Assembly (NCBI GenBank): GCA_001949185.1
Contig: BDGG01000001.1
Location: forward strand, 5,509,527-5,573,526
DNA from: Ramazzottius varieornatus
Lineage: Eukaryota; Animalia; Tardigrada
Direction of reading: 5' to 3'
DNA: 64,000 nt
Shown here: positions 10,525-25,900 of the stretch, in pieces
Layout: every line of letters starts with the position of its first letter
Position numbering within the stretch: the stretch's first letter is position 1
Notes under the pieces: model-generated
What the model saw: only the letters and a program-made list of their open reading frames with translations
Database searches by the model: none
Told to the model about the DNA's origin: nothing
Translations under genes and position numbers: made by a program

Positions 10525-11867
10525 ATGGGAAGACGCAAAGAAGTAGCTACCGACGTGGAGACGAGTCAGACACCAGCGAAGAAGTCTCGCAAGCCACGAG
10601 CAGTCAGAGAGCATGCCTCAGACACCTCCCAAGCGCAACTATGGAGTGTGGATGCCTGGCGAGGAGCAGCATTCGGTTCAGTAGATCGAAGATCCCACCA
10701 ACTATCTACTGTACAAGGGACCAGGAAAGAAGAACACTGCGACGGGAAAGATGGCGACGACCGGAACGACAAAGGCTGTAGTGCACCGCAAGATATCCGT
10801 TCACTTGGGCCAGCTTGGCGTTCACCGAGATAGTACGACAATCACGAAAAAGCTCCTTCACTTGGAAAAAGGATACAGGGCGGCAATGGTCTTTCTAAAA
10901 TCTACTGGGTCTGGCTACGGCAATCCTGATCCTGACATACCTATTGAGGAGAAAATGGAGGACGCTAAAAACCAAGGTAAATTTTTCACCTCGATCAACT
11001 GGCGAAGTTTGTGACGTCAGATCAGGCTATACAAAATGAAAGGGGTATTGACTACGTCATACTTGACTCGCCCTATAACATACAACAACGCTTCAGAACC
11101 GGAAGTCGACTTTTCCTGCGGACTTCTGGAGTTGCCCGAAGATGTTTCTCCTGTTGCTACGTCTCAGCTCATTACGGGGTAACAGCGGAGTTGTTTGGCA
11201 TATTGGAGATGTTGGTCGAACGTTTTGCCTACCGCTCGTTCGGAACGTCTTATTGCGGATTCGTGAACGAATGAAAACTCGACAAACAGACTCGACCCAA
11301 TTCTTTTTCCAAGTGGCGCACGCTTGCAGTGTTATTAACCACGAAAGCGCGCCACTTGGAGAAGAATCTTGTCAAGTTTGCTTGTCAAGCTCCCATTTGT
11401 TCAGATTCACGATTCAAAGATCTGAATGAGCGGAAGCCAACGCGTTTGACCGGGGAAAGTCTCGCATGCCTGCCAACTTTGCTGTTTACCCTGTAGTTTT
11501 CCTAGCTCAGTCAAGCCTACTCCGCAACCAAGAGTGTCAGAATATCCTGAGAAGAAATGTCAAGACAGCAAAACTCCACAGAAATCACTGACCATCGCCG
11601 AAGCTCTACAAAAAAAGCACGAAGGATCAGCTTGCCATAGCGGAAAAGAAATTCTTAGTGGAAGAAAAGAAGCTAGAGCTGGCAGGGAAAATTGCCGACG
11701 AGGAACGAGAGGAACGTCGACAACAAAGACAGCTCGATAATGACCAGAGAGAAAAAGACCGAGAAGAAAGAAACGAAGTACGTGATTATGAATTGAAGAA
11801 ACTAGAACTGCAACTCGATCAAGCTAAGAAACGTTTCACTGAACAAAACGTCGAGCTGGCTTTCTGA
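10525..11867 (+). pseudogene. Harbinger-associated Myb/SANT-like DNA-binding protein, disrupted
   Basis: MGRRKE...WSVD...NYLLYKG...GTTK...KKLLHLEKGYRAAMVFLKSTGSG, with a charged coiled-coil C-terminus (EEKKLELA...KKLELQLD). Frameshifts and a stop are present. Confidence 0.7.
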
Positions 11868-13131
11868 CATTCGAGATTATTTTTTTGATGGCCTCTCGAA
11901 AGCCTTTTCCGTCCATAACTGCGGAATCGTGGCTCATTTCTGATACTTCCGGTTCTCGGTATTTTGTCCAGTTGTCATTAAAATAGCTGTCTTTGAGTAA
12001 CATGTTGTGTAAAACAACACATGATTGTATCCACTCTACAGCTGCTCGATGGGTCTGCTTATCGTGAATCTTGATTCTAAAGGACGGCAAAGACGGAAAA
12101 CGTCCCTTCAAGATGGCAATGGTGTGTTCGATCTTAATTCTTGTTCAAGAGTGGTAAAAGTTGAATCGCTCGTTGTTCGCTGACATGACTCCGGCGGCGG
12201 GCTTCTTGTAGGAAGCGATGGTATCAGTTGACGTAGTGTAGGCGCTGTCAGCGAGAAGATATTTGCCTGGTGAAAACAGCTTGGAGACTTGTCTTGCCAT
12301 AGAATTACAGAATACTTTCATATAATGGGCCGACCCACAAAATCCGATAAACATGTATCGAATTTTACGCTTGTCGTCGCAAACCACCATCGCTGATATT
12401 CCGCATCGGGACTTGTGGCTCCAGTAATCCTCGCCATCTTTGGTAGGCTTGTACTCTAACGGGTCTAACGTGCCGTCCAACATTCCAACACAATCAGAAA
12501 ATCCCAAATCCCGAAGAATTCGCGCCTACAATATCAGACTTCAATAAACTTGTGGTGTCCAGCATACCAAAGAATTTCAAGAGCTAAGGTATAAGTACCT
12601 TAATAGTTCTTTCCTCTTTATCCGGCCAGTTAACCACACTTCCTTCTACCGCGAACAGAGCCTCGATACATCTAGTGGTGCATAGAAGGACACAGCCTTC
12701 TGAAACTCCGAAACGTCTAGCAATCTTCCCTACGGAGGTTGAGTTTCCCGAACTCCCGAAACGATAGGAAAAAATCATAAGCTGTAGTCGTGGATCGGCT
12801 TGAGGTGTTTTGCCGTGAAAGTTGAAGACCTTATGACCGACGATCTTGCTTAGTACCATCTCAAATGACTCACGGGACATCTGATTTCCTCCTTGAACCG
12901 TCCATCATCCAGTGCCGGAAGCAAATACCCCGCAAAGTGCTTACTTTTAGGCACTTCCGGTCGCTGAAGGTATCGTGTAGCGGTAACGAGCTGAAGTAGC
13001 ACGGTAGGAACATCCACTTCATCATTGTTGTCATGTTCGTCGAGGTCCAAATTCATCTTCATTAGCTTCCGACCAACCACCCATTCTTCCAGATCACCAA
13101 TGAAGCGCTTTCTTTCGGAAGTGCCCGGCAT
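11836..13131 (-). pseudogene. Harbinger (DDE_Tnp_4, HARBI1-like) transposase, disrupted
   Basis: CVGMLDGT, YLLADSAY, IEHTIAILKGRF and CVVLHN motifs. Intron 12598-12526; 1-bp deletion near 12881; premature TGA at 12145-12147. Confidence 0.9.
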
Positions 13132-16991: not shown

Positions 16992-19900
16992 CTAAAAGTG
17001 CTGCAGAGCTATCAAGAGATCATCGTCATGCAGTAGCGTATCTTGTGGCGGATTACACATAACAAAACGTTGGTTCTTCCTCCTGCCATCTGTCCGACGG
17101 AACACTCCAAGCGATGTGATATTCCGCGTGCGAAGTAGCTCAACGTAGACTTGCCCGTATGTATTGACTTTCTCCTGAAAAAACGACAATGATACGTTTA
17201 TTCGCCCATGAACGTGAAACTTGGGATACCCCACCTGCGCGTTCAGAGATTCGAGGACATCCTCTACAGAAGGTTGAACAATCCGAACCCGATCTGGCTT
17301 CCGTTCTAACGGAATATTCATGCCGACTTCACTGTCGATGAGTCCGTCACCTTCTGCCAGAACATTCTCTAGCTCTTTGGATATGGGTCCAAATATCATT
17401 CCCTCCACCACGCTGACCAAAAACGGATCAAAGAAACACATAACCATCAAGAGATCCAAAACGCTGTTTGTGAACGCACGTCCTTCGCTGTAAGGCTGAG
17501 TTAGGTAGAATTCGCGTGTGGATGAATCCGTATCGTCGTCATCCAGGAAAACCACATTTGTTTCTCTGGCTACAGAAATCACGATTCCGGACACTTCAAA
17601 GTATCATAAGTCTTCTTGAACGACGCAAACTGCGTCATAGTAAGCGTGTGTTGCGTGCAGTACCATCCCCGTAAACTCTACGCGTACTGTGGACGTCAAT
17701 TCGCGAAGTTCAAGAAGCATTACAGTATACGTTAAGCTGAGTAGCAGCACTGGCTAACCTAGGTCGGTTATAAGAGGCACTTCGGATCCGTGTTTCCAGA
17801 GGGGACTTTTGCTTTCTAGAGGGTTCGCCCGAGACTCTGCGGGGACACCTTCTTTGGAGAACGACGTGGTCCGAACATTGGCTGTTGCCAAAATGACGGA
17901 CTTGTCCAACAAGGCTGGGTCTTGATCCTTGAGATCCCTACTGACAGTCGGTGCGCTCATTATGACGCACATTTTGCACGTCATCAAACTACAATATGAA
18001 AGTCTTATGTCAAGCGAGTAGTCGCCTTGTGAAACTCTACATATCGACTGCGTGTATCAGGCATATCTTACCTTGCTCGACGAAGGTCTCCACGTTTCAA
18101 TGCACTTCCCTGAGAACAACGGAGTGAAGCACAGGTTGTGGAGTATGTGCTGTTCGAGATTACTGATCGAGAAAGCGTACCTCAAGAATATAAATTTGTG
18201 GCAAGTTGCCGATAACGGGCCACTCCTTCTCCAGAAAGCCCTTGTTGCTGACAAGCAAGATATCGTGTAGTTCTTCGTAAGGGATAGCAGCGGAACGTAG
18301 TGGCAGTACGAAATTGGCGAGACCGATCGCTTCGTTTTCTTTTCCAGCAAGAACGCAGAGTACAATGTGGTTGCTAAACGTTTTTGACGATTCCTTCTTC
18401 ACGTCCTGCAATAACGTTTCATGAACCAAGCGAACAATCCAAACGCTTTTGCATCACGGATTGTACAAACTTACGACAATGACTGTGGAGATATCCGGTG
18501 CAGGTACCCAGTAAAACATGCCGGTAGAGTCAAGTTGCTGGTGGCCGTTGATAGGCTGGTCGCACCCCATCGCTAGACAGAGCTCAGAGGGTCCTCCAGG
18601 AGGGTTCTTTGTGCAGGAAGTAGCAAGCGTATCGGCGGGAGACACGTTGGGACAGGACATATTTTTCTTAGTTTCTACCTCTAGCGCTGAGTTGGCTTCC
18701 AGTTCGGTGCGTGATGGTAGTTCTTCCACTGTGTGGGTGCTGCTCTTCTTGGCTTCTCTTGCAGTAGGCATGTGACATTTGCATTTTTTGATGGCTGACA
18801 GTTCGACGTTTTCGTGACAGTTCTTACAGTACACTCGAACCCTGCATAAAGTTGTAGTGTGGGTTATAATTAGGCTCAGCAGGCTGAAACTATGGTCACA
18901 TGCCGAAAGGTTGTACATTACCTGTCCACTTTACTGCTTCTCTCACCCAGGAAGAAACCGATTGTATCAGTAGTAATTGTTCCACCACCCGCAATCCCGT
19001 CGATGGTAGCGCTGCAGGCACATTGTTCTGGATTGTGATGGGTTGCAAGAAGGACCAATTTTAGCCGGCGATAACAGAAAATGCTCGCTTCTTGGAAGTT
19101 CATCCCGACGAAGAACGGACTGAATTTTCGATAGTAGATCTCGAACCTGGTTCCACGCTGGTAATCGTCCATCCATGACTTTTTATGCTGGAGATTGTTG
19201 AAACTTTACAAACCTGCCTATATTTTTCTGCTGGCCGGAAATTGTTTACCTTGATCTTCGATCTGGATGAGCGTGTTGTAAAGAGGTTGGCCATCAACGT
19301 TGAAAAGCCTTGTGCGACACAGCTTTGAGCCAGAAGTCCCAGCTGTAGTTCCGCCAGGCAGATGACGGAATCTCCATTTAGTGGAGACCAGTGCGGAGTG
19401 TTGAGGACGTGCGGCTAATAAAACTTCTGCTTCATCAAGCAGCCAGTGAAGTACTGTAGTGCTCCTAAATTAACGCGCACTCAACCACGTGATGAGTCAT
19501 CGTTGTCCAGTATGATCAGATGCTACCAGCGTAGCCTGTGTGATTCTCACCCGGGCATCATTTACTGTTCACGTGGTTGAGTGCGCGTTAACTTAGGAGC
19601 ATTACAGTACAAGTTGCGGACGGCCAATTTTCGCACACACTACTTTGAAAGTGAAGTACGTACCTTGTTGTGGAAGTGGTGTAGTTCAACGATAACTCTA
19701 GCATTGTGCTTGAGGTTCTTAGCCGAGACAACCCGCATGATATTTGCAGCGTCGTCAGCATCAGGGTCAAAAGTGTGTCTGCTGCACAGAATCAACGTTG
19801 CTGCCGCCTCCGTCAATGCGACGCGATGAAGGTCCTCGAGTTTCAGCATTGAACCTTGTCGGTAATAGACCTTGGTGTGATGCAGCAGGAGTTGGGTTTT

Positions 19901-22900
19901 TATAGCAGCGTCTGGGGGATTGCTGGAAAAACAAACAGACCACAGTACGGTTTGTTAATTTTTCTTTAGTTGCTGTATGTAGTTTTGTTGAAAGCCAGTG
20001 AATTTTAAGAAAAGCACACGTGCCTGTCCTAAATGTGGGAATGGACAAAAATNNNNNNNNNNNNNNNNNNNNNNNNNNNNNNNNNNNNNNNNNNNNNNNN
20101 NNNNNNNNNNNNNNNNNNNNNNNNNNNNNNNNNNNNNNNNNNNNNNNNNNNNNNNNNNNNNNNNNNNNNNNNNNNNNNNNNNNNNNNNNNNNNNNNNNNN
20201 NNNNNNNNNNNNNNNNNNNNNNNNNNNNNNNNNNNNNNNNNNNNNNNNNNNNNNNNNNNNNNNNNNNNNNNNNNNNNNNNNNNNNNNNNNNNNNNNNNNN
20301 NNNNNNNNNNNNNNNNNNNNNNNNNNNNNNNNNNNNNNNNNNNNNNNNNNNNNNNNNNNNNNNNNNNNNNNNNNNNNNNNNNNNNNNNNNNNNNNNNNNN
20401 NNNNNNNNNNNNNNNNNNNNNNNNNNNNNNNNNNNNNNNNNNNNNNNNNNNNNNNNNNNNNNNNNNNNNNNNNNNNNNNATTTGGGGAGGTAGCACATTA
20501 TCAAATTGCTTGCAGGAGAAACTTCGCCCAAAGGTAAATATATCGCATGGCACGTACTTTGGGCGAGTTTCACGATTTGTTTGATATCGTGGGCACGATA
20601 TCAAACAAATGCGGGGATGGGGTAAGAAATGCCTGCCACCGAACTTGACTCTGCGAGCCCATCATATCATACAATGCGCGACACCAATCAAGCAAATGTT
20701 GGAACCTGACAGAAATACCTGTCAGACTGGAAAACGACTTATGGCGGCGATGGCCGCCCATAGGCGCCTGTACTGTATATGGTTGTGTTTGATGTGAAAT
20801 TGGACCACGACAAGCTGATTGGACTCTTACTCGCTGAGAACCACAATCTTGAAGTATTTGCTGCGAATACGCTCTTTCTCGTAGAATTCCCGGACGAAAT
20901 ACTTGAAATTATAGGCGGTGACGTGTCCGGTGAGGATTATGTGTCTACAACGTTCGACAAAATTCACAAGTCAAAGACAGTGCATTGAAACTCTTTTAGA
21001 AACGACGAATTTTTCTTACAGATAACTCGAGGAGGGATGGTAGCTTCTTTGGTACTCTGGCTTCACCTTCATGTAGTCGGCAATCACAGGTATGGCTTTC
21101 GCAACGACTCCCTTCATGTAAACCAAAAACATTGTAAGACTGCATGAGGCTGCTGAAACTTCTGGATAACCGGATGGGCCATCGTTAGTGCCAGAAACCG
21201 ACGTACCAAGGCTAGTAGCTGGAAACTGTAGATAATGATCCTCCCGGTTGCTGTGCGTACTTGCATGTAGCTCAAGTCCAGCATGGAAACTCTGCCATAA
21301 ATATACAGGAAGCACTTCCAAAACCCGGTTGGCTGGCCGTTGTACAAATCTTCTCCGTCTGGAGCATACAGCAATGGATCGCCTATATTTTCCGCCTACC
21401 GGACACAGTACAAGGTCAACCCTCGACGTAGTCTGTACACGCAAGACGAGAAATTATGGTACAGTAAAAATTATGGGACAAGCGGAAAGGACGGCAAAAT
21501 GGCATTACTGTGAGTCGGTTGCGTACGTACGTGCTCCCGTACCGCCGTAGGGAAAAGGCCTGTCCTATAGTTTTTACTGTACCATAACTTCTCGTCCTGC
21601 ATGTACTCTGAATGCCACACTATTAGATTACTCTTTCATCGAAAGTCGAGGGTTCGTACCAGGTGCAGGAATCCGGAAGCAACCATGGTCAGCGAAGTGA
21701 CAACAAAAATCAGTCGGAAGACTTTAGTCTTGTTCGCTGAGCGAAGTAGACCAGTAGCCACTGCAAGGTCGAGTAGCCAGCCGCCAAAGTTGTACACTCT
21801 CAAGAATCCAAAACCTGAAAAATGGATTTTTTGTATACTTGTAACAGGGTCTAGTACGTATAAAGTGGTGGGAAAATACCGATAAATTGTCGGCAAAGCC
21901 ACGGATCGACAACTGCGTTTGGAACATGAAAATAGTCAACCAGTGAATGAAACGATAATACTGCCGGTAGCTTTTTCTCCCGTCCGAGAACCTGTACATG
22001 GAAGTATTGAACTTATTCAAACCTGGCTAAACGAAAATGCCGAAATTGTAAGCACGCACAGAATCCTACCCGGATAAGGAAGTAAATCAAGAGGTACACG
22101 TTGACCGCCAAATCAATCCAATGGAGCGCATGGTTCCTCTCTGCGCAGGCTTCAATCGTCTGGTTTTTGACAGACGCCAACCAAAGATGAATGCTGAGGC
22201 TGATTCCAGAACAAATCACCCCAAGTGACATCTGTGGAAACAAAAAAAACTATCGATTCGTGGAAAAGAAAACATAGACACAGTTGATATCGACTCGTTT
22301 CATTGGTCAGTAAGCTTACCCATAACCTCCCGATTAAGTTGTGCTCAGACGCTGCTGAGACTATGAAAGCTCTAACTGGCCACCTTGTTCTCTTCTTCCG
22401 GGCAAGTTCTCTGATTTGCTTTCGGAATGTGATACTATTCGGGGTAGTATCATCTGTTGCTTTGTCTTGCAGAGGTTCCTTCTCTGGCTCATTGGCATCA
22501 TGCTTTCTGCCGTGTGTATGCCTATAATCAACGTCGTCCAAGTCTTCCGGAAGATCTCCGCAGGACAATAGGCGGCGAAAGAACTGAAAGATGGTTTGGT
22601 GGTCGACGATTAGCGCGAGAGCAATCGCGAGAAGAAAGCCAACGCCGAAGTAGACGTAAGCTAACTCTGGTCGGCCCAGCAGGTAACATGGAACACCGTA
22701 TTGCCTGTAAGGAACTGAGAAAGTACTGTACGGTCCATCCTACAGAAACTTCGATCTACTGTAGTTCCGCGTGCGCCATGTACCAGATAAGAAGCAAGGG
22801 TGTGACTCACCAGCTTCCAGTGGATGAATTTCCAATAGAAGAGTTGAGTAACGGCGGGTGGGAAAAGTTGCCGAAACGTTCTAATAGAGCTCTGTGTTTG

Positions 22901-23004
22901 GGTACTGCAGGAAACGGCATCGCTAAACCTCCCATCCCTCGTCTACCGCCACCACCGTCGCTCCCTCGGGCTTCGCCATCGCCGCCGCCGAACTTACCGT
23001 CCAT
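16992..23004 (-). CDS. Divergent Slo/BK-family (slowpoke-like) channel subunit with non-canonical pore; multi-exon, apparently intact
   Basis: Exons splice in frame through S0 ([20 protein letters not shown]), S1-S6, RCK1 (HIILTGHVT; [15 protein letters not shown]; [15 protein letters not shown]), CKNCH, RCK2 (NHIVLCV; NFVLPLRS) and the Ca-bowl (FLDDDDTD...YLTQPY). Pore exon 21207-21395 lacks GYG. Confidence 0.9.
17602..17728. mobile_element. Degenerate TA-flanked MITE in Slo intron
   Basis: Imperfect IR CTTCTTGAAC..GC / GC..GTTCAAGAAG. Right end GCATTACAG-TA resembles the 19454 MITE end. Confidence 0.45.
19454..19607. mobile_element. Tc1/mariner-type MITE (family A) in Slo intron
   Basis: ~39-bp TIRs CTGTAGTGCTCCTAAATTAACGCGCACTCAACCACGTGA with 2 mismatches; TA on both sides. 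Related copy at 58368. Confidence 0.85.
20017..20479. other. Left end of a family-C MITE running into an assembly gap (N 20053-20479)
   Basis: CACGTGCCTGTCCTAAATGTGGGAATGGACAAAAAT is nearly identical to the 27132 MITE left end. Flanking Slo exons join in frame, so no coding exon is needed in the gap. Confidence 0.7.
21438..21603. mobile_element. TA-flanked MITE (family B) in Slo intron
   Basis: TIRs CACGCAAGACGAGAAATTATGGTACAGTAAAAATTATGGGACA and its near reverse complement; TA TSD. Longer relative at 61855. Confidence 0.85.
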
Positions 23005-23695
23005 CAGCCAATAACGATAAGCTTACGAATGTATCCAGGTTCCGGAAATATGCTCCAGCTCGAGAAGTAACTTACTTCCATGTCATTCGCATATAAAATA
23101 CAATGGATATGTGTGAGATTGTACTAGAGAAAATACGTTTCACGGTCAAAATATGCAAAATGCGTTATGCGCTGTGTTTGCCGGCACTTTCGTCCATGCG
23201 TTGTTACCTATGTACTGTGTCTCCTATAAAATCCGTGCACCGTTGTGCTCCCTTGCCTTCACAGCCATGCGGCTCGGAACGATCAATGCAGCTACAGTAC
23301 CTCGCCACACAAGGCTGTTGAGTAAGCTCGGTTTTCTATGTAAACGAGTCTCGCGTATTACACCTGTCAGTCCGTCAAGTCAGCGCATTTGGGTCTCGTT
23401 CCTTTGCATGAGCCAGCACTGAGCGAGTTCATGGACATACTTACACGCGTACGTCGTATTCGCCTAGTTTATTTACGATGTTACGAATGCAGCCAATCAT
23501 TTTCATATTTTCCCTTTGATAAGTCAGCTTGCATGATAGACGGTTCTTGAAACTGCTGATTTCTAAACTTGTTTTTTGGGAGCAAGATAGCTAATTGGAA
23601 AAATCGGAACGCTGATGGGTAGAGAGAGGCAACAAAATCGGCGAGGAACAATGCTCAGGCACGGAGCGCCATCTGGAAACTTATCGTGAAGTACG

Positions 23696-24823
23696 TTACA
23701 GCTCTTGTTTTTTGTATCCTTTTTCCGACTCCTTTTTGGCTGATTCCTCTTGCTTATTGCCGCAGAACGACAGCTCCTCACACATCGATTCGGGCTTGAG
23801 GTATCTCGATACCTTGTCCATCACAGGTGGCGCTGCCAGCATGAATTCCTTTTCACAAGCCTGCGTATCCTTCTTCCCGTATTCCATGCAAATCGACTTC
23901 GCTGCATCTAGAACTCTGTCATCTAGTTCGAAAGAGCCAAGGCGGAGAATCTCCTTGCAGTGCTCCAACATCTTCTTGCATTCTTCGCACGATGCTTCTT
24001 GAGGAATTGCGAGTGATTCGTCATCGAGTTGATCATCGTTACACAGCTCGGCGTTCCGGCACATCATCATCGGGTCCAGAAGGAGTTCATGGACCACCCA
24101 AGCTTCTTCAAAATGGTTCGCCAGCTCAGCACACATCTCGTTGACGTACTTGTTGGATATGTGAGCACACAAGTTCTTTATCATCGGAGGGTACTCGGGG
24201 TTGCTGAGCTTGTCCAGATACGTAGTTCTGACTGCTTTTGCAAAGTTCATGCAGGTATTGCAGTGTTCCCCGGAGTTCGTGAGCTGGTTGGTAACTGGTT
24301 TCCAGAAGGAGTTCGACTACAATGAAAACGGAATAGGCGTGAACAATAAAATTCGGCAGCTCACTTTGCGGCCAGAACAGGTATCGAAATCAAACGAATA
24401 ATCGAGACCAGAAACTGTTGAAGATTGAAACATTACCTTGTTGTGTGGTACCACGCCGCAAAATTCCAGATGGTGACAGAGGTAAATAGTCGATTTGCCC
24501 AGATTAAAATCGATATTCTTTCGAATTTTATGCATGTTCCTGTTGAGTCCCATGACACAATTTTCCTGTTCCCCTGTTGTACCAGAAGGTAGTTGTTTGC
24601 AGGTATCCTTGAAGAATTGAATGAGTTCGGGTTTGGTTGTCTTTCTGGTCTCCCGAAGCACATTTAGTCCACCCAAAAGGTTCATCACACACCACCAGCA
24701 TTCCGGTGTGCTGGTATTTTCGAGGATTTTCATTGATTCGGCATTCCGGTACTCATAGTCATCTTTCGCTGCTATGACGCGTAGCCAAAGCGAAGCCAAA
24801 AAACACAGAGATAATGACTTCAT
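23696..24823 (-). CDS. Secreted saposin-like protein with three SapB domains (2 exons, ~335 aa)
   Basis: Signal peptide MKSLSLCFLASLWLRVIAA; three CxxC...C...C...CxxxxxC units; phase-0 intron 24436-24317. Confidence 0.8.
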
Positions 24824-25900
24824 CTTAAGGCTCTTGCATGTTACTGTGCTGTAGGAAGAAGTATGTAATTAACTTAAGGCAGTTTCACCGGTGACCAGAT
24901 CAGGCTTGCTGTTTTTGTCCCACAGTAACTGAAAACTTCCAGTGTAGTACTGAACGCGGGTCAACAACAAATGTGGTCTTTTACGAGTGCCGCGTTTTTC
25001 ACAATAGGGAGCAAGGTGCAGTCTTTTTTACAGAGCACGCCAGCTACTGGGACCGGAAATTCGATCCTATCACGGCCAAGTTCAAGTTCACAGCCTAGTT
25101 TCCTGACTTTTCGAAGGCGCGTACTGTTGACCAGCCACATGGTGTTAATACTGTAGTACTGTACGTGACGGTCTTCCCTGACTGTACAATGCTTGCCAAC
25201 CCGATGACACATGACTCGACCTACGACTGATTAGTGCTGCAACGTCACGTGGCATCGGGTTGGCACGCACCAACGACATTGTAGACATTTATACATCCAG
25301 CTTCCGCGTTCCAGCTGGTCTATCTCGAGGCAGTAGCAGTACGCGCACGAAGAAAAGTGTGGAACAGCGCAAAGTCTGGACCCAGCGGAAAAAGCCGGCA
25401 TCGTGAGATTCAACCATAAAAAATTGCCAGAAAGTACACTCAGTTTCACGCAATTCTCGAAATTTTTTTACGGTTGATTACGTTGCCGTCTTTTTTCGCT
25501 TGGTCCAGACTTTCTCTTCGTGCCTGCACAGAAATACAAGGAACTATGCTCGGTTGTGCTTGACTTTATTGACGCATTGGGCAACGTCGCAGAGCTTGCC
25601 GGGCAGAAAAGGTTTGCCTGGGGCTCTTCGGTTTGGAACTTGCGAACGAATTACGCGTACAGTGTGAACAACAAGATTTGCGCAAGACCAGTACCGGTCA
25701 CACAACTTCCGTCTTTGCCGGCTCTCTGCCTTCTTGTCTTAGCTTCGTGAAATACAATATACAAACGATACGTCGATAGATGAGAACGATGGATGAGAGC
25801 ATTGATCTCTGCGACGAAGTTTAATCAAGTATCAGGCAATTTATCCTTTTTAGATTCACCGTACCACAATATATTCCAGCCTGGACGATGTAGACTTTGA

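Follow-up and report, generated by a model that had tools for sequence, protein, structure and literature searches.

The window, a stretch of 64,000 nucleotides of Ramazzottius varieornatus DNA, carries a Slo1-type channel gene on its minus strand. From RNA and homology-guided splice sites, the gene was modelled as 1176 codons in 16 exons, with a reading frame that no stop interrupts. Exon 1 (22811–23195; RNA contigs, translation) comprises the 5' UTR and codons 1–65, with the ATG at 23002–23004 and an in-frame stop seven codons 5' of it. RNA joints and alignment assigned an S0-like hydrophobic helix and a long S0–S1 linker to exon 2 (22320–22704), S1–S2 to exon 3 (22070–22231), S3 to exon 4 (21880–21991), and S4 together with S5 to exon 5 (21660–21814). 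The turret, pore helix, filter loop and first half of S6 are encoded by exon 6 (21207–21395; translation, RNA, alignment), and the end of S6 and the linker to RCK1 by exon 7 (21020–21111; RNA, alignment).

The remaining exons encode the cytoplasmic gating ring. RCK1 starts in exon 8 (20831–20944; Pfam Slo-like_RCK, RNA) and continues in exon 9 (19664–19922; Pfam, RNA), the 5' end of which was set by an RNA overhang at 20831. The BK_channel_a domain occupies exon 10 (19250–19414), the most conserved of all exons, and, with its second part, exon 11 (18922–19187), both placed by Pfam and homology. A Cys-rich segment and the variable RCK1–RCK2 linker were assigned to exon 12 (18475–18841) by homology, and the start of RCK2 to exon 13 (18181–18405) by Pfam and homology. 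Exon 14 (18072–18109) is a 38-nt micro-exon recognised by reading the DNA and checking the frame; it restores a conserved RCK2 segment. RCK2 continues in exon 15 (17759–17988; homology), and exon 16 (16992–17569; Pfam, alignment, frame check) holds the calcium-bowl acidic run, the Slowpoke_C domain and a TAG stop at 16992–16994, leaving a very short C-terminal tail. Exons 9–16 were placed with homologous proteins as guides and a GT–AG and frame filter, and rest on homology and length, whereas exons 1–8 and the 8/9 junction rest on RNA. The coding length downstream of 20831 (2125 nt) is compatible with that of the RNA contigs there (2161–2214 nt).

Transcription was assessed via public sequencing runs. 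Spliced contigs of 3.7–3.8 kb from four runs, each belonging to a different study, skipped seven introns at 20480–23600, all seven of which have GT..AG ends on the minus strand. The contigs placed exon 6 between exons 5 and 7, and in the DNA this exon is flanked by an AG acceptor and a GT donor. Past 20831, the RNA overhang was the sequence from 19922 downward, bar one synonymous strain difference. About one third of the words sampled from 20480–23100 were present in twenty public runs of the same organism, the share expected if exons only were represented. As the RNA label of the runs was a guess, they were taken as mRNA because their contigs were intron-free in four studies. The channel gene is expressed and intact. 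The in-frame, stop-free splicing claimed in the original prediction held up, by RNA for exons 1–8 and the 8/9 joint and by homology-guided sites for the rest, and the spliced transcript that it called for is seen, for exons 1–8, in the RNA contigs of the four studies, which use exon 6 and no GYG exon.

Several other features surround the coding exons. Intron 5 contains a MITE-like element (21435–21606) that is no part of the channel; it spans 172 bp, its 49-nt inverted ends are 88% complementary, the genome contains no fewer than 40 near-full-length copies at 74–85% identity, and RNA contigs from other loci stack on it. A run of 427 N (20053–20479) falls in intron 8, and an exon concealed in it was ruled out, as RNA joins 20831 straight to 19922. 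The upstream neighbour on the minus strand, at approximately 23460–24870, consists of Cys-rich open frames with a saposin-like look, and RNA contig coverage there (23420–23600) was much deeper than at the channel gene. Further minus-strand open frames at approximately 11839–12904 resembled a PIF/Harbinger-type DDE transposase, an impression gained from their translation.

The pore and the channel body

The minus-strand translation of exon 6 was identical to the peptide originally reported for 21207–21395. MAFFT and HMMER alignments to real Slo1 sequences showed that this exon reads MLDLSY where Slo1 has TVGYGD, and both translation and alignment put the six codons at 21267–21284 on the minus strand (exon 6 residues 38–43), as had been predicted. 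The alignment to Slo1, described as free of gaps, is so from the pore-helix Trp through S6; the turret ahead of the pore helix needs gaps. Both filter glycines are absent from the pore loop of the window copy and of its clade, i.e., the divergent tardigrade proteins described below. Around the filter, the window copy reads S-M-L-D-L-S-Y and the family consensus T-L-[LI]-D-L-S-G, the reading of the other divergent proteins in the alignment; the copy deviates at four flanking positions (T>S, L>M, G>Y and R>Q) and keeps the L-D-L-S core. A [TSC]xG[YFL]G motif was found in none of the six frames at 16–24 kb, and a TxG[YF]G motif nowhere in the whole window. An alternative GYG pore exon was excluded by the RNA joints together with the absence of the motif from the gene.

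Searches with the pore exon in isolation returned little. phmmer with the exon alone against PDB sequences gave no Slo match, a pore profile built from five paralogs matched BK only at an E-value of about 0.6, and the ESM Atlas yielded only weak K+ channel pore look-alikes, at 0.86. No short open reading frame fragments matched in a search with the 63-residue exon. As exon-level searches were weak, the pore was assigned by its position and by full-length alignment rather than by exon-level similarity.

In the body of the channel, Pfam detected Slo-like_RCK twice, BK_channel_a and Slowpoke_C (exons 8–11, 13 and 16), mostly above the curated cut-offs; exon 8 alone scored 22.9 bits against Slo-like_RCK, the cut-off of which is 24. 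Against the PDB, the RCK1 exon scored 68 bits with Slo1, 48 with Slo3 and 32–34 with Slo2. The tandem RCK1–RCK2 gating ring that characterises the Slo1/BK family is present, and S0 of canonical Slo1 has its aligned counterpart in a hydrophobic segment of exon 2. The calcium bowl in exon 16 consists of four Asp, a Thr and a fifth Asp ahead of a conserved Y-L-T-Q-P, and exon 9 contains the RCK1 acidic Ca2+ motif D-P-D-A-D-D-A. Most clade members, including the window copy, have kept both the bowl and the RCK1 motif; the Paramacrobiotus protein P0008 has no bowl. Overall, the window protein is about 31–36% identical to canonical Slo1.

The membrane part departs from BK at further sites. The RxxRxxR pattern of S4 is broken, with the first Arg replaced by Gly and the third by Asn, so that the middle Arg, in exon 5, is the sole one kept; the same pattern is found clade-wide. 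No match to Ion_trans (PF00520) or Ion_trans_2 (PF07885) was obtained on exons 2, 3, 5 and 6 at E-values up to 0.1; both domains are missing from all proteins of the divergent clade and present in canonical tardigrade Slo1. S6 of the clade keeps the Pro but not the Gly-Gly hinge, and has a conserved Gln under the filter. Its lower part carries a Lys or Arg, and Gln (Val in the window copy) stands in for the first of the inner-mouth Glu residues of BK. The filter loop is preceded, at a distance of three residues, by a conserved Arg or Lys, and in most members it is followed, two residues on, by a second basic residue; the window copy has no such post-filter Arg.

Relatives, constraint and predicted structure

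Relatives of the gene, which the original prediction had proposed to look for, turned out to be numerous. A search of the R. varieornatus assembly (55.8 Mb, 200 contigs) with the pore exon found four further loci with the same pore type at 56–72% identity, and Asp-Leu-Ser is invariant at the filter position in all five pore exons of the species. One of the paralogs equals R. varieornatus proteins deposited in GenBank. The core [TS][LM][LI]DLS is common to the window gene, its four paralogs and several proteins each in Hypsibius exemplaris and Paramacrobiotus metropolitanus. The five-exon pore profile had 11 matches among 1.84 billion representative proteins; all the named ones were tardigrade (R. 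varieornatus and P. metropolitanus), and the nameless fragments, compared by eye, closely resembled particular tardigrade paralogs. A word-based search with P0008 added two H. exemplaris and three further Paramacrobiotus proteins, followed by the canonical Slo1 of the three species. Canonical Slo1 with TVGYGD has been kept in all three tardigrade species, as in arthropod Slo1; that of R. varieornatus (RvY_11161) is 63–65% identical to its arthropod counterparts. From these comparisons, the window gene is a member of a Slo1-derived multi-gene subfamily that has so far been found only in tardigrades.

Phylogenetic trees, built as quick searches with SH-aLRT support, grouped the divergent proteins into one clade (SH-aLRT 98–100) on a long stem. 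At least two sub-clades each pair a Hypsibius with a Paramacrobiotus protein; since these sub-clades are common to both genera, the filter change and the first duplications predate the split between them. In the free tree, the divergent clade fell outside the group of annelid and panarthropod Slo1, and a sister position to tardigrade Slo1 was not rejected by the AU test (p = 0.25). As no member was seen outside tardigrades, an origin within tardigrades is the economical reading. The window protein is approximately 40% (32–40%) identical to its clade mates. Within the core clade it deviates most strongly, and its terminal branch (1.3–1.9 substitutions per site) is the longest. No ortholog of the window copy itself was found in the other species.

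Some sequences at the margins of the family were also recorded. P0010 and P0012 of P. metropolitanus (1745–1749 aa) form a remote offshoot of the clade with an extremely long branch; this offshoot has L-L-D-V-T-S at the filter position and a very large gating-ring insertion. The gene model of Paramacrobiotus P0017 (1872 aa) also includes a SURF1 domain (PF02104) and is probably a merger of two neighbouring genes. Judged by the public protein P0001, a very short intron, about 46 nt long, interrupts the pore exon of the R. varieornatus paralog RvY_11543 (C6:1570571-1570805). Further, weaker RCK-type matches at 26–34% identity in the same genome (C2:612398, C1:6443942, C1:9330376 and C2:275151) may be Slo2-like or P0010-like.

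Constraint within the clade was gauged exon by exon and from strain differences. Only one exon is better conserved within the clade than the pore exon, in which identity is 56% between the window copy and the other members, 61% among those members and 30% to canonical Slo1; the gating ring is closer to canonical Slo1 than the membrane part is. The paralogs are only 35–57% identical in protein, so that synonymous sites between them are saturated, and strain differences in the RNA contigs were used instead of paralog dN/dS. A strain variant present in three of the four runs differed at 13 coding positions in exons 1–8, five synonymous and eight nonsynonymous. The resulting pN/pS was 0.49 over exons 1–8, 0.77 in the N-terminus and S0–S1 linker, and 0.30 from S1 onward. 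No nonsynonymous difference was found in S2–S6; the two differences there were synonymous, and both lie in the pore exon. Few as they are, these strain differences speak against a freely drifting membrane core and suggest that the termini are weakly constrained. A pseudogene was rejected for the family and is unlikely for the window copy, given its splicing, its 1176 stop-free codons and the strain pattern.

The fold of the pore region was modelled with AlphaFold2 on P0001, a 492-residue fragment of an R. varieornatus paralog that stands in for the window protein, using a 19-row alignment. The model, with a mean pLDDT of 68, contains S5, a pore helix, a re-entrant loop and S6: helices at 87–116, the pore helix at 135–147, an 11-residue loop at 148–158 and S6 at 159–187 (pLDDT 71–80). 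The top Foldseek matches of the model were Slo1 structures. The P-loop architecture is thus predicted to persist.

Possible functions and comparison with known channels

The structural reading in the original prediction, that of a Slo1-type gene without a K+ filter, was borne out: the gene is transcribed and uninterrupted, and a canonical Slo1 exists elsewhere in the genome. As for the functions suggested with it, sequence alone cannot choose among a new selectivity, a non-conducting sensor and a silent subunit. The pore probably passes something other than potassium selectively. Filter glycines are needed for the backbone geometry of a K+ filter, and in the weaver form of GIRK2 a single change in the first filter Gly already abolishes selectivity. 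Without either glycine the carbonyl cage cannot form, which makes K+ selectivity very unlikely. The idea that an unconventional filter might still select K+ has in its favour only the shared Slo1 ancestry and the intact framework of pore helix and S6, to be set against two missing glycines and the failure of Ion_trans_2 across the whole clade, and we consider it extremely improbable.

The explanation that we prefer, with a probability of about one half, is that of an expressed Slo1-derived channel with a tetrameric, Ca2+-opened, non-K+-selective pore and a putative Asp ring. Such a protein would retain the BK body (S0–S6, the tandem-RCK gating ring, the acidic calcium bowl and the RCK1 acidic motif) and would still form a tetrameric pore. 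The conserved binding motifs suggest that intracellular Ca2+ would open this pore, and the loss of two S4 arginines suggests that voltage sensing would be slight. The pore would be unable to build the K+-selecting carbonyl cage. Instead, each subunit would contribute its invariant Asp to an acidic ring of four, comparable to those of TRPV5/6 (T-I-I-D), CNG and NaK, and the outcome would be a non-selective cation channel or a divalent-permeable one. The window copy would be the fastest-evolving of the core clade, with its membrane core still constrained. A candidate working pore with new chemistry is favoured by the near-invariant Asp amid aliphatic residues and by the well-conserved pore exon. 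More tentatively, the family may represent a new class of channels, with at least five genes per species, that are Ca2+-gated and weakly voltage-dependent and have a four-Asp-ring pore passing Ca2+ or cations non-selectively.

Several observations count against the preferred explanation. One is that the residues of the filter loop, for the most part hydrophobic (L, L/I, L), might plug the pore. A serious rival is a non-conducting or modulatory subunit, which would fold, assemble with itself, with paralogs or with canonical Slo1, and block ions with its hydrophobic loop while serving as a Ca2+ sensor, a scaffold, or a tuner or silencer of BK. Filter positions that are mostly Leu or Ile fit this, as do a gating ring that has stayed closer to canonical Slo1 than the membrane part has and the availability of canonical Slo1 as a possible partner. 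Yet the known silent Kv subunits keep GYG, D-L-S and the polar S6 positions are near-invariant over at least 17 sequences, which is more than folding alone needs, and at least five paralogs per species are many for a mere modulator; we regard such a subunit as less likely than the preferred channel. Conserved basic residues also flank the Asp on both sides and recur low in S6, at a place where BK has Glu; their charge might cancel that of the Asp or make anions the favoured ions. A conducting pore of another selectivity, e.g., for anions, would owe it to these residues at the filter (Arg/Lys three before and two after the loop) and at the inner mouth (Lys/Arg in lower S6, and Gln or Val in place of the Glu of BK). 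This appears improbable, as the window copy has no post-filter Arg and the Asp is invariant; moreover, we know of no anion-selective P-loop tetrameric channel.

Further points concern the window copy itself, with its four departures from the consensus, long branch, pN/pS of 0.49 and lack of an ortholog among the sequences found in other species. Conceivably, constraint has relaxed on this copy in particular and its function is being lost, while the family as a whole is functional. Its terminal branch is the longest in the core clade, T>S, L>M, G>Y and R>Q all lie near the filter, nonsynonymous strain differences outnumber synonymous ones (8 vs. 5 in exons 1–8), and the C-terminal tail is very short. 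Nevertheless, the 1176 codons in 16 exons contain no stop or frameshift, the transcript is spliced and found in runs of four studies, the nonsynonymous differences are concentrated in the N-terminus and loops with none in S2–S6, and the L-D-L-S core is unbroken, and drift of this copy is accordingly improbable as well.

As far as we know, all Slo-family channels studied to date are K+ channels, and GYG is treated as a family constant. The tardigrade genes form a natural, conserved and expressed clade in which BK gating machinery is combined with an exchanged filter, and they provide a ready-made test of the extent to which the pore of a K+ channel can be turned to a new use, in a parallel to the departure of CNG/HCN from Kv. 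The locus had been put forward as a candidate for an undescribed system. This may apply to the filter change in tardigrade Slo/BK, which was not found in the searchable literature (a body that omits most subscription journals), and not to the gene models, since public databases already hold those of the clade under the name of calcium-activated potassium channels, a naming that our results correct. Duplication of the calcium-activated potassium channel family in both tardigrade species has been reported and tied to calcium signalling in anhydrobiosis (PMC5531438), with nothing said there on the pore of the duplicated family; the present findings give this expansion concrete content. If the channel with four Asp is real, it would depolarise cells or amplify Ca2+ signals where BK hyperpolarises, and it could contribute to entry into anhydrobiosis, for which calcium signalling has been proposed.

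Among known channels, Slo1/BK (KCNMA1, slowpoke; including RvY_11161) shares with the window protein S0–S6, RCK1–RCK2, BK_channel_a, Slowpoke_C, the acidic calcium bowl and the RCK1 acidic motif; the window copy differs in its MLDLSY filter, the loss of two S4 arginines, and the altered Gly-Gly hinge and inner-mouth Glu ring of S6. Slo3 (KCNU1) and Slo2 (KCNT1/2) are likewise Slo paralogs with a modified gating-ring ligand or selectivity, but the RCK1 of the window protein is far nearer to Slo1, and both Slo3 and Slo2 keep the GYG filter. The silent Kv subunits (Kv5, 6, 8 and 9) are similar in being paralogs that might act only via a conducting relative; they, too, keep GYG. CNG, HCN and NaK provide the precedent of a K+ channel fold with an altered filter that allows non-selective cation flow, and CNG and NaK carry an acidic side chain in the filter. 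They are, however, separate and ancient families with cyclic-nucleotide or other gating, and they retain at least one filter Gly, whereas the tardigrade clade has none. TRPV5/TRPV6 (T-I-I-D) have a Thr, two aliphatic residues and an Asp, as does the clade with T-L-[LI]-D, although this likeness is only four residues long, appears only once the ungapped alignment is shifted by one residue, and links loops that share no homology beyond the general plan of tetrameric P-loop channels. In TRPV6, the filter is TIID and its four Asp form the Ca2+ site (PMC10510737).
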